Below are positions 19,515-28,473 of a stretch of DNA of 64,000 nucleotides, piece after piece. Below the pieces are notes generated by a model. That model had not been told where the DNA came from and did no database searches. It saw only the letters and a program-made list of their open reading frames with translations. Source of the DNA: Chlorokybus atmophyticus. Its lineage: Eukaryota > Plantae > Mesostigma and Chlorokybus algae. Each line of letters begins with the position of its first letter. Within the stretch, counting starts at the first letter, position 1. The stretch spans positions 258,203 to 322,202 of the forward strand of contig RHPI01000260.1 of NCBI GenBank assembly GCA_009103225.1, given 5' to 3'. Both the position numbers and the translations under genes were made by a program.

Positions 19515-22500
19515 ATGGATCTGGCGGGCGAAGATGAGGAGGACCACAGGGCCCCTGCTTCTCTCACTGTAGTACCAGTTAAGGTGAGGAAACGCAAATG
19601 GCACAGGTAGTTGAGATATTGTTAAGAGTTGTTGCATTGTCCTCACTGAGGTGTGTGCTTGTGTTTGCTATCACAGATTGCATCTACTGCACAGACAGAC
19701 GGGTGCGTTTGCTTTGATCTTGGACGTACAGACACATAAGTACAGATTAGCAGCACAATCTGTGCGTCTGAGTTCTTTACTACCGCAGGTGGTGGAGCAG
19801 AACGGTTCGGGGGCAAGGCCGCCACGACTGGTGCAATGGGCCGGAATCGGCGTGGACTCGCTGGTGAGGGGTGATGCGATTGAGAGACGCACACATGCAG
19901 ACAGACTGGCGCACATAGAAGCTCACTGACGCAAGAAAGTGTACAGTGTACATGCACGCGCACGCGCATTCGCACATTCACACACGCATGCACAAACTTT
20001 CATTTCACAAGAACAGATGCATGCACATAAGCACGCACGACGTCCGAACTGGCGCAGACGCTGGCTTTTAGCTGCTGGCCATACATGCACAGCATGGCAG
20101 GGCAGCATGTATACAAATTCAACAAAGTTATGCGATGCCATCAGGCACACGCGGGCCTGCCAACATTCATGCTGCGCTCCATCACGGGCTCCGCGGTGCT
20201 CCAGGCCGCACCCGACCAGCAGGTAAGCCTCGTTTCAAGGTTCACTCGTGTATCCACACATCAACATTTGATACACAATAAGGGGTCTTACCTCCCCTCT
20301 CAGGGCGAGTATGCGTTCTGCGGGGTGGCTGCGCACCCGTCGCTGCACGGCCTCGTGCACCAGATGTGGATGGCGGAAGAGGGAGGCCACGCCGTCGGCG
20401 CATGGCGCAACCGATGGGTGAGAACTGTTGTGCACACAACATGCTTAACCATACTGCACTAAACAACCGTTCACAACTGTTGACAGCTGTGTAACACATC
20501 AGTGTGTTGCTTGGTACATGGCACCAACTGTACCACACTGTGCTACAAACCACATGCTGTACTTTGCTAGGCTGCACGACTACTATGTATCAGCTACTTG
20601 GGCTTAAGCAACAAGCACTGTTGTTGCTTATGCTTGCAATTTTTGACAGGCCGGTGGGCTGTTCTTGTGGCATAGAAGCGCTCCCGCGACCGCTCCCGCT
20701 CCTGTCACAAGCTTGCCCAACGTGCGTGCATGCGTGCGTATATGCGGAGCTACGCAGAGCATGTGTATCTGATCACAGTCTGTTCCTCACAACTACAATG
20801 CTTAAATCGCAGGTGCCGTCTCGCGCGCCGCTCATGTGTATGCGCGTGGCCGACGACGGCAGCCTTGCCGTTGCGCAGGTGAGAGAAGTCTTACATGCAT
20901 GCAAGACTGGTGCATTCATCATGTTGCAAACCTGTGTGTGTGCGCTGTGATTTGCCCAGACGGCCGCCAACGAGGTGTTCGTATGGGAAGCGCCCTCAAC
21001 CGACTCGTGGCGGGGAGATGGACCCGCCACAACATCCACAGTAAGACAACAATACAAACGCCCAAAAACAAAGTCAAGTACCATCACCATCATCATCATC
21101 ATCATCATCATCATCATCATCATCATCATGCACATTCACATGCACACGCCGAGCGCACACCCACACCCACCCACGCCCGATCATCTCAGGCCGCCAACCC
21201 TGGCTTCCCTCCCTCTGGCGGCACTTGGACTCTCCTCCCCTCCCCCTCCCCAACAACATCCACCCCTACCTCTCCCGCTCGCCCTCTCTCCGCCCGCTTC
21301 TTCCGCGCCCCCGCGGCCCCCGCCGTCCCCGCCTTGACCATCGCCGCACCCGCACTACACACGGGAGATGTTGGTCATGTTGGGTTGCGTGGGGAGGTGG
21401 ATGTGGTGGTGTGGAGGTACTACGGCCGGCGGGTGCGGGCGCCCATGGGGGGGAGGGTGGGAGAGAGGAGGGTGGGAGGGGGAGGGAAAGTGCGTGAGGA
21501 TGGGGAGGAGGATGGAGATGGTGGGGGGCCCGTGTGCAATGCGTATGCGAGGAGCGTGTCGCTTGAGACGTTGGCGTCACGGGAGGGGGGAAGCGGCGTG
21601 TCTGTCGACGCCAAGTGGAGGTGTGGACTATGGTTGGTACACACACCGCATCTTGGAGCCAACATCAGGAGAATGACAAGATTGTTGTGCTTCGTGCAGT
21701 GGCTGTCCAGCTGCGTGGTGTCCACGCGGCGACCTCGTGGCCATCGGCGCGGGGCCTGCCCTCGTCATTGTTGGTGGAGAGGGCCGCGTCGAAGCCAGTG
21801 CACGCTGGGCAGAGGTGAGAGAGAGAGACAACATGTGGCTATACATGTCCTCGCTCACCTGATTGTGTACTCAACTGGCTGCACGTTTCAGGTGATTGGG
21901 ATGAAAGAGGACTCAACTGCAGTTCCATCCATAGCAGGTATCACTTGCCTACCAACCATCACATGCGAACACCACGCATCTGCTCACTTCAATCTTCCAG
22001 CAACAAACATATACGTTATGTGTGTGTATGCGTGTGTTGTCACTTCTCAGCTCTCGCGTGGTCTCCCGACGGCCTCCTCCTCGCCGTCCTCGACTCCTCC
22101 GGCAACCTTGCCGGCTTCTCCTCGTCGGGTCGTCAGCTGGGTCTGGTGCCGGGCGTGGCGCTGGGAGGTGGTGGTCAGGGCAGCGGTGGCGGTGGCGGGA
22201 GCAAGGGAGCGTGCTTCCCGGGGTATGCGTGGCGGGGACAAGCGACAAACGCACCGGCGTGGATGTCGTGTAAGCGGGGAGGGTGGGTGGTTGGCATTGA
22301 GTGTGCGTGTGCGTGTGTGCATGCGTGTGGGTGTGTATGCGTGCACGCGTACATACATGCTTGTTGTGCTAGCTTAGCTTCTCATGCTATGATACCCTGT
22401 TCCATGTAGTGACCTTCTATGAGACCGGTGTCAACCGCACGAAAACCCCTCGCAACAACACTCCCCAACTCCGCAAGTGGCAGCTAGCCATCTCCGACGG

Positions 22501-25500: not shown

Positions 25501-28473
25501 GCTGAGTATGTGGGGAGGTATCAGATCCCACCTGAAGAGGATGCCACGCCTCAAGCGAGTCAGTATGGGTACAACAATGGCGATTCCCCACTGCGAAGAC
25601 GTGCGACGTTTGTGCGACCGCACTCTGCACCCAACCAACATGAACAGGTAAGCATAGTAGTGAGATAGAGCAACAGTACCAACATGGACGGTGATCTTTG
25701 ATGGATTGATCTGTGTATGTTGCAGTTCGTGTGGCAAAGTCCAGTGCGCACCTTTGGAGCCAACACACGCACGTGGACGCAGCCAGCGCAGCCAGCACCC
25801 GCCTCCGCGCCCACAACGCACGCATACACATACCCACAATCCACACCCACACCATCCCCTCCTCCTTCGCGCCCCGCACCCGCCCCAACGCTGTCCCGCA
25901 CGCTCTCCGCCAACGACATGCTCCACGGCGTGTACACCCGCACGCGCACGGCGCAGACGGCGTCAAGGTTGAGGGCTCAGACGGCCGCGACGATAACGCA
26001 ACAACACCGAGACAATGATGTTATCCTGCTGAGGAGTGAGCACACGCCTCGTTTGAGGGATGAAAGGAGCAACACGTTGAAGGCAACAACTGTGACGGGT
26101 AAGGCGAAGAGTGGGAGTGGGAGGCAGAGAACGCTCATGGAGACCACCTTTGTGGCGAGGTTGTCGCCGGAAGCGGAGATGAAGCAGCTGCAGCTCAGAG
26201 CCAAAACTCTGCAAGGTGCGTACTGATGAATGATGAGTTGTTGGCAAGTGTTTTAGTCAACCAACACGCTTGCTTTGCGCCAGCCCAGGCGTACGCAAAG
26301 CAGATCGCTAAGCACGAACAGCGGGCGGGAGCCACACACACACTCGCAAGGTGTGTGATACAAGTACCTTTCAACTCCTTCATCACAACCATGTCTTGTA
26401 CTCTCACGCGTGTGCGCGTGAGAGTACAAGACATGGTTGAACAAGACATGCGCAGGCGCGCACGCACACATGCACACGCACACATACAACCTTCTGCCTG
26501 TCAGGACTACGAACGGTATGAAGAACGATCGACCACCCTCGGCAACAAAGCAAACGCCTCCCTCGCGATCGCCTTCTCTCACGCCGCGCGAGTCGAAGTT
26601 GCCTTTTGCAACTTCAACAGCTGACATGGCCACTCAGACAGCAGCAGCGAACACCATTGAAGAGTATGCTGCACTGGTAGTGGAGGAGGCCAGTACGACA
26701 CGCAAAGACAATGTGCAGGACATGACACGGGGTGACCACATACATGATGAGGACGACGATGAGGACGATGAGGAGTGTGACAATGAACACGACCTAGAGG
26801 TCAACACAAGTCATAGTGATGCAAGAGACGAACTAGTTGTTGACACTGTTGCGATGTGATGCAGGTTGAAGACACACCTTTGCAGCTGTCCGACACATCC
26901 ACCGGCATCTTCTCCACCTTAAACTCAGCTTTCCTCGACTGCACCTCGTCATACCGTCGGCGTATATCCGCCCTGTCACGAGCCAAACCCTACCTGACTC
27001 GTGCCGAAGTCCTTCACAACATCGTTGATATTGACAAACACCGCGAGTTTGTTAACGCCATGCTGGACGTCGACGCCGGGGAAGAGATGACCAGAGGGCA
27101 GCTGAGAAGGGCGTTCGGGGAGTGCGAGGAGGCGGAGAGGAGGGTGGCGGGGGGAGGTAAGGGGGGGGTGGGAGGGTTGGATTGGTGGGTGGTGTTTGTC
27201 GGTGTGGGTGTGTGATGTGGTGTGGTGTTGGCGTGTGCAGATACACCAGAGGCGGTGAAGCAAGTGGCAGCGTATGTTGAGGACAATGCCGATCACGTGG
27301 AAGGCACCTTCAAAGGGTACACTTATGCGCACGCATGCATAGGCACACATGCAAGTAAACAAACCACAAACACGCCCACCCAGACACCACCGCGCGCACA
27401 CACACACACACACAATCACAGTGCCAACACTTACACCAACTACGACATGCAGTTTCGACCCCGCTCAAACTGGCCGTCTCACCTTCCGTCCCCTCCTCCG
27501 TTCCCTCCGCTTCCTTCTCCCCGGCCTTCACGCCGGCGACCTTCGGTCCGTGCTGGCGTGGCTGCGCGGACGCATGTTGGCACGCGAAGCGGGAGCGGGA
27601 GCGGGAGCGGGAGCGGGAGGTGTTGGGTGGGGGGAGTTTAGGACGATGCTGAGGGTTGAGGAGACGGGCGGGGTCGGGCGTAGCGAGGGAGCGTTGGAGA
27701 AGTGGTGGGAAGGACGAGTGGATGAGGAGAAGGCGAGAAGGGAGGCGGGGGCTCTGACCAGCGGGAAACAAGTGGGTGTGGGTGTGCACGCACGCATCTG
27801 TGCATGCACATGCATGCACAGATGCGTGCGCGCGTGTGTGCCTACATTTGTGCTTGTTTCGCTTGAGCATGCCTGCCTGTGCTTGTACGTGCGTGTGTGT
27901 GCGTGCATATGTGCTTGCGTGCTTGCGTGCGTGTGGATGGCTGTGCTGCTCTGCGTGTGTTGCATATCAGTACCGTCTGCACACACACTGCACTTCATTG
28001 AAAGCTTGTGGCCCAAACCAATCTCACAACCTTCTCGACTAAACACGCAACGCCCTCTCACCCTCCACCCGCCTCACCCCTTCTCCTCCTCTCTCTCTCT
28101 CTCTCTCTCTCTCTCTCTCTCTCTCTCTCTCTCTCTCTCTCTCTCTCTCTCTCTCTCTCTCTCTCTCTCTCTCTCTCTCTCTCTCTCTCTCTCTCTCTCT
28201 CTCTCTCTCTCTCTCTCTCTCTCTCTCTCTCTCTCTCTCTCTCTCTCTCTCTCTCTCTCTCTCTCTCTCTCTCTCTCTCTCTCTCTCTCTCTCTCTCNAT
28301 CCCCTCTCCACCCATCCCCACACCCGCACCTGTCGTCGTCACCAACAGGCACTTTGCGCCGGCAGGACCGTTCCCCCGCCGCAGTGGAGCTCAGCGCCGC
28401 CATCGCCCAGGTAGAACGGGCCGCCAAGGGACTGGAGAGGGACCTGGTGCACGCCGCGGGGGTGGTGTCGTAG
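19515..28473 (+). CDS. Very large multi-exon protein: N-terminal beta-propeller (CPLANE1/JBTS17-like), helical/TPR-like middle, low-complexity region, C-terminal EF-hand-like segment
   Basis: Spliced exons give [73 protein letters not shown], then [17 protein letters not shown] and [11 protein letters not shown]. Stop at 28473. The gene model is confident; the family call is from remembered motifs. Confidence 0.65.
21082..21128. repeat. (CAT)n intronic microsatellite
   Basis: Run of CAT triplets seen directly. Confidence 0.95.
23798..23843. repeat. (TC)n microsatellite ending at an N
   Basis: Seen directly. Confidence 0.95.
28089..28297. repeat. Long (TC)n microsatellite ending at an N (intronic)
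   Basis: About 200 bp of pure TC, seen directly. Confidence 0.97.

Follow-up and report, generated by a model that had tools for sequence, protein, structure and literature searches.

The stretch of DNA considered here, called the window below, covers 64,000 nucleotides of the streptophyte alga Chlorokybus atmophyticus (GenBank assembly GCA_009103225.1, contig RHPI01000260.1, positions 258,203 to 322,202 of the forward strand). Its positions 19515-28473 probably hold one real nuclear gene, rich in introns and from a streptophyte alga of the Chlorokybus type. We consider it reasonably probable that the gene encodes a large scaffold protein (~1,800 residues), fast-evolving or lineage-restricted, in which a propeller and helices are combined with a long disordered linker. 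No named family is assigned to the product. An earlier note on this locus had proposed a homolog of CPLANE1 (also JBTS17 or C5orf42), known from the Joubert ciliopathy; that link was unsupported by any test run in our study, and we count CPLANE1 as one of several candidates. As it stands, the product would be a large lineage-restricted propeller-plus-helix scaffold without recognizable relatives, and the gene is a candidate for structure-based classification.

The gene structure was read directly from the DNA. Manual, phase-checked curation of three-frame translations and splice-site marks gave a 25-exon, phase-consistent GT-AG model on the + strand, which spans ~9 kb between the ATG at 19515 and a TAG stop at 28471-28473; these two ends are those proposed in the earlier note. 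The model has 1,842 codons with a single terminal stop, and all exons are joined in phase. Donors begin with GT in 24 of the 24 introns and fit a consensus of (C/A)AG at the exon end and GT(G/A)AG in the intron, while 20 introns have a CAG acceptor and the remaining 4 a TAG acceptor. The coding signal is equally direct: the G+C content is 0.63 in exons vs 0.51 in introns, and the G+C content at third codon positions (GC3) is 0.69. Two runs without stops, 514 and 495 codons long, lie within DNA of ~58% G+C, and runs of such length at this base composition make a non-coding origin very unlikely. Additionally, the algal peptide strings quoted in the earlier note could all be confirmed on the + strand, each within an exon with canonical splice sites. 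They form five blocks, of which block 1 lies at 19816-19845, block 2 at 20650-20679, block 4 at 21710-21748 and block 5 at 22053-22109. Block 3 is spliced across exons 6 and 7, as the note had assumed, with its first part at 20846-20878 and EVFVWE at 20972-20989. As the first codon of block 4 is split by the acceptor, the block begins as P-AWCPRGD in the model.

The first ~455 residues probably form a divergent WD-repeat-like region, folded as a seven-bladed beta-propeller. Eight motifs of the h-x-h-W type are visible within residues 1-455 (VGAW, LFLW, VFVW, VVVW, VPAW, LAW, APAW and LRFW). Two of these belong to motifs of the aWsPdG kind (AWCPRGD and LAWSPDG), and a further h-x-h-W motif, RLVQW in block 1, was recognized by eye. 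Pfam was searched with each exon and with each stop-free stretch of >=42 residues, at E <= 1 or E <= 10. In this exon-wise scan, neither WD40 (PF00400) nor any other propeller family related to it passed the threshold, and the repeats are WD-like by motif only; the sole trace was one of ANAPC4_WD40 on the first 24 residues of exon 10 (E = 0.26, 12 bits vs a cutoff of 22.9). Residues ~470-1010, from exon 11 to the start of exon 17, look helical, and we infer an alpha-helical, solenoid-like region of ~540 residues. The AlphaFold2 (AF2) model of exon 11 alone has a few short strands and then long helices, with a pLDDT score (predicted local distance difference test) of 40. The Ser/Thr/Pro/Gln-rich stretch that follows (residues ~1010-1560) is probably disordered; over residues 1011-1560, P makes up 10%, S 9%, T 12% and Q 7%. 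A near-identical peptide occurs twice, 340 residues apart, at 23164-23196 (residue 638, 11 residues) and ~24724-24762 (residue 977, 13 residues). This duplicated peptide of the helical region could reflect repetition within the protein or serve as a functional motif.

The last ~260 residues, encoded by exons 21-24, look like a small helical part, and the AF2 model of exon 23 comprises four helices at pLDDT 59. This C-terminus had been described in the earlier note as EF-hand-like, a description that the searches did not bear out. Pfam returned no EF-hand in exons 21, 22 and 23 at E <= 10, PDB sequence searches with exons 21 and 23 returned no EF-hand protein, and Foldseek of the exon 23 model against the PDB gave no match. 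In the candidate 12-residue loop of exon 23, position 3 is Ala, position 5 Thr and position 12 Pro, so that at these three places it lacks the Ca2+-binding residues of the canonical loop used for comparison, D-x-[DN]-x-[DNS]-G-x-[ILV]-x-x-x-E.

Searches for relatives pointed to no named family. The Pfam scan found no Joubert (PF15392), WD40, TPR or EF-hand family in any exon, in searches made exon by exon with many N-terminal exons of only 22-38 residues. The same scan recognized the MRG family in the neighbouring gene at 1e-17, and this positive control indicates that exon-wise scanning has power for conserved families. A weak match to DUF7236 was obtained on exon 21 (E = 0.03). For an exhaustive phmmer search, the frame-1 stretch 22373-23842 (490 residues), which includes 364 coding residues of exons 11 and 13, was compared with 1.84 billion representatives at E <= 0.001; with these exon 11 and 13 residues, no CPLANE1, intraflagellar transport (IFT) or other eukaryotic protein was returned. 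The sole phmmer matches were three bacterial HYR/T9SS repeat proteins, which we rejected as spurious, as one 27-residue piece was matched 8 to 29 times. These matches illustrate that E = 1e-24 can arise between repeat proteins and a query to which they are unrelated. Word searches with the same frame-1 stretch and with exon 21 gave no match, and PDB sequence searches with exons 10, 11, 13, 21 and 23 returned noise only. Among language-model neighbours in the ESM Atlas, exon 11 fell near IFT140, WDR19, IFT172-TPR and clathrin-linker clusters at 0.77-0.78, which are weak scores and a lead only; exon 21 had no look-alikes there.

That the gene is a true, very divergent CPLANE1/JBTS17 orthologue, whose product would act with INTU, FUZ, WDPCP and RSG1 at the zoospore basal body and recruit IFT-A, appears quite unlikely to us. 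In its favour, Chlorokybus is a ciliated organism that makes flagellated zoospores. In order and approximate size, the domains of the algal protein match the AF2 model of JBTS17 (bioRxiv 10.64898/2026.10.05.756796). The earlier note had also held that five colinear blocks shared with the human N-terminus argue against chance. By hand count, about 27 of 72 positions are shared with the human strings quoted in that note, which are unverified, and the blocks would count for orthology only if the quoted strings are correct. Blocks 2-5, and arguably block 1, are moreover generic repeated WD-strand motifs. Any WD propeller would give several colinear short blocks of 35-40% identity, so that the five-block argument carries little weight. 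The sole CPLANE1-specific model used, Pfam Joubert (PF15392), matched no exon even at E <= 10, and the exhaustive phmmer search returned no CPLANE1 with 364 residues of the region that would correspond to Helix1. Furthermore, the algal helical region has ~540 residues vs ~1,140 in JBTS17, about half, and the papers searched hold no record of CPLANE1 outside animals and no statement for or against its presence there. CPLANE proteins have been studied almost only in animals. Should the orthologue reading nevertheless be right, for which we see a slim chance, the CPLANE module of the basal body would be older than animals, and most green plants would have lost it. The IFT-A recruitment module would then have originated before the plant/animal split, and Chlorokybus would offer a simple flagellate system for its study. 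A ciliary module would thereby be extended to the green lineage, a result that would be notable without being revolutionary.

The same architecture is found in other propeller-plus-solenoid families, and the gene could encode a diverged member of one of them, such as an IFT-A-like protein, a RabGEF partner of the WDPCP/RMC1/HPS5 type, RIC1, NBAS, a nucleoporin or a vacuolar tether subunit. The IFT and clathrin-linker neighbours of exon 11, with weak scores <0.8, and the ANAPC4_WD40 trace on exon 10 are consistent with such an origin. However, Pfam and solved structures represent these families well, and still none of them was matched by any exon at E <= 10; the exhaustive phmmer search would have found streptophyte orthologues of families so conserved. 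WDPCP was not returned by PDB sequence searches with exons 10, 11 and 13 at E <= 10, and its Pfam family had no match on these exons. We therefore regard this explanation as unlikely. A different kind of alternative concerns the unity of the gene, as the membership of the C-terminal part in the same protein depends on the weak join of exons 20 and 21. At 26854-26864, the frame of exon 20 closes with ATG TGA; this stop shares bases with an ATG in the next frame (TGATG), and the next coding stretch comes immediately after. The overlap is either spliced out with a 65-nucleotide intron that has a GTCAAC donor, or it reflects two open reading frames (ORFs) or an assembly indel. Two merged genes or a decayed gene would mean that the WD/helical/disordered protein ends at the in-frame stop at 26857-26859, where the unjoined frame stops, and that the last ~260 residues (26859-28473) are a separate ORF. 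The non-consensus GTCAAC donor and the 65-nucleotide intron that the join requires fit this possibility, as does the lack of RNA support. However, introns of 58 to 81 nucleotides are present elsewhere in the gene, a new eukaryotic gene is unlikely to begin exactly on the preceding stop, where it would have no room for a promoter, and exons 21-24 again join in phase down to the stop at 28471-28473 given in the earlier note. A merged or decayed gene is thus, in our view, highly doubtful.

The single propeller-plus-helix scaffold remains our preferred reading, and several points weigh against it. The protein and its close relatives are missing from a collection of 15 billion proteins, in which a conserved scaffold would usually be represented. 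The statements on fold rest on motifs and low-confidence single-exon models. RNA support is lacking, as only one sequencing run matched, and that with 7% of the sampled words. The model has weak boundaries at the exon 8 donor, the exon 9b donor (GTATCA), the 41-nucleotide intron between exons 18 and 19, and the exon 20 donor (GTCAAC). An alternative end of exon 18 at 26098 (donor GTAAGG), also in phase, avoids the 41-nucleotide intron, and the protein would then have 1,803 residues.

If the preferred scaffold is correct, the propeller face and the helical arm would, as in coat, IFT and CPLANE-type proteins, provide platforms to which partner proteins bind, either on membranes or at an organelle, and the disordered stretch between the helical parts would carry short docking or phosphorylation motifs. 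By analogy with this architecture, a role in membrane traffic or at the base of the flagellum is to be expected. The scaffold role we infer from the architecture, and the fold classes from motifs and single-exon models.

The exons of the model follow one another on the + strand, and the N-terminal ones are short. Exon 1 (19515..19583, residues 1-23) opens with the start ATG and closes with the donor GTGAGG. Block 1 is held by exon 2 (19789..19863, residues 24-48; acceptor CAG, donor GTGAGG, phase 0), and exon 3 (20145..20222, residues 49-74; acceptor CAG, donor GTAAGC) and exon 4 (20304..20417, residues 75-112; acceptor CAG, donor GTGAGA, GC3 0.84) continue in phase 0. Block 2 falls in exon 5 (20650..20721, residues 113-136; acceptor CAG, donor GTGCGT). 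The two halves of block 3, of 11 and 10 residues, lie in exon 6 (20813..20878, residues 137-158; acceptor CAG, donor GTGAGA) and exon 7 (20960..21040, residues 159-185; acceptor CAG, donor GTAAGA), respectively. Exon 8 (21190..21493, residues 186-286) encodes a Pro/Ser/Thr-rich insert between a phase 0 CAG acceptor and a GTGAGG donor; its 3' end is the least certain N-terminal boundary, and the donor was picked to supply the phase of exon 9. Block 4 lies in exon 9 (21711..21814, residues 287-321; acceptor CAG, donor GTGAGA), the frame of which is backed by the in-phase chain of exons 9, 9b and 10. Exon 9b (21892..21937, residues 322-336) contributes 15 residues before a weak GTATCA donor and is the sole exon found that bridges exon 9, which ends in phase 0, and exon 10, which needs one carried base. 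Exon 10 (22051..22269, residues 337-409) holds block 5 and then a Gly-rich loop.

Longer exons encode the middle of the protein. Exon 11 (22410..23027, residues 410-615; acceptor TAG, donor GTAAGT) has 205 stop-free codons and covers the last WD-like strand (VSLRFWDLL), a linker and the first helices. The helical sequence proceeds through exon 12 (23102..23237, residues 616-660), which is in phase at both ends, and exon 13 (23296..23773, residues 661-820), which has 159 stop-free codons and a GC3 of 0.80. Three shorter exons then follow: exon 14 (23881..23943, residues 821-841; acceptor CAG, donor GTAAAG, phase 0), exon 15 (24010..24173, residues 842-895; acceptor TAG, donor GTGATG) and exon 16 (24270..24385, residues 896-934), the last being in phase at both ends. 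With 350 stop-free codons, exon 17 (24596..25647, residues 935-1285; donor GTAAGC) passes from a short structured start into a long Ser/Thr/Pro/Gln-rich and probably disordered sequence. Exon 18 (25726..26215, residues 1286-1448) is in phase with either of its two ends, 26215 or the alternative 26098, and is followed by exon 19 (26257..26350, residues 1449-1479; acceptor TAG, donor GTGTGT) and by exon 20 (26505..26799, residues 1480-1578), which is acidic and has the weak donor GTCAAC. The C-terminal helical part opens with exon 21 (26865..27156, residues 1579-1675) and continues in phase through exon 22 (27241..27316, residues 1676-1700; weak donor GTACAC) to exon 23 (27453..27771, residues 1701-1807), which holds the two 11-residue strings that the earlier note called EF-hand-like. 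The last exon, exon 24 (28366..28473, residues 1808-1842), has a phase 0 CAG acceptor and ends with the TAG stop at 28471-28473.

Simple repeats mark several introns of the gene. (CT)n microsatellites lie at 23800-23843 and ~28080-28297, in the introns after exons 13 and 23, and each ends at a single N; a (CAT)n run lies at ~21085-21130 in the intron after exon 7. Mechanical ORFs across these places are inflated, because (CT)n and (CAT)n tracts translate as long Ser-Leu or His runs. The intron between exons 10 and 11 contains (TG)-rich DNA at 22306-22343. Upstream of the gene, on the minus strand (17112-18299), lies an MRG-family chromatin gene that is transcribed divergently from it; three exon ORFs matched Pfam MRG (1.3e-17 and 7.5e-4) and an MSL3 chromodomain-like family (4.5e-7). 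Downstream, an ORF on the minus strand (32102-32524) matched PF24046, 'At4g08330 beta-tent', at 2.8e-14, and represents a plant-type small protein gene.

Known systems resemble the algal protein in the order of their parts and differ from it in detail. In human JBTS17, the helical bundles (residues 426-1569) bind INTU and RSG1, and the preprint on JBTS17 (bioRxiv 10.64898/2026.10.05.756796) predicts that it contacts INTU, WDPCP and RSG1. WDPCP, of ~750 residues, is far shorter than the ~1,840-residue algal protein. Its structure (Fritz, a CPLANE subunit; PDB 7Q3D) shows a WD40 propeller of seven blades and, after it, an alpha-solenoid (PMC9012472), the same order as that proposed for the algal protein. 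The AF2 model of JBTS17 comprises a WD-repeat domain (1-425), two helical bundles up to residue 1569 and then ~1,600 mostly disordered residues (bioRxiv 10.64898/2026.10.05.756796). With JBTS17, the algal protein as modelled would share an N-terminal WD-repeat propeller of ~425-455 residues, helical bundles and a very long disordered region. In contrast, JBTS17 has 3,197 residues and ends disordered, whereas the algal protein would carry a folded helical C-terminus after its disordered part; no tool gave a sequence-level link between them, and the likeness is one of architecture only. IFT140, WDR19/IFT144, IFT172 and clathrin heavy chain also place a helical repeat arm after a propeller. Their Pfam families (Beta-prop_IFT140, TPR_IF140-IFT172 and others) match no exon, and these IFT-A and coat-type proteins differ further in having no 550-residue disordered region. 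The architecture of the algal protein fits other propeller-plus-helix proteins as well as it fits JBTS17.

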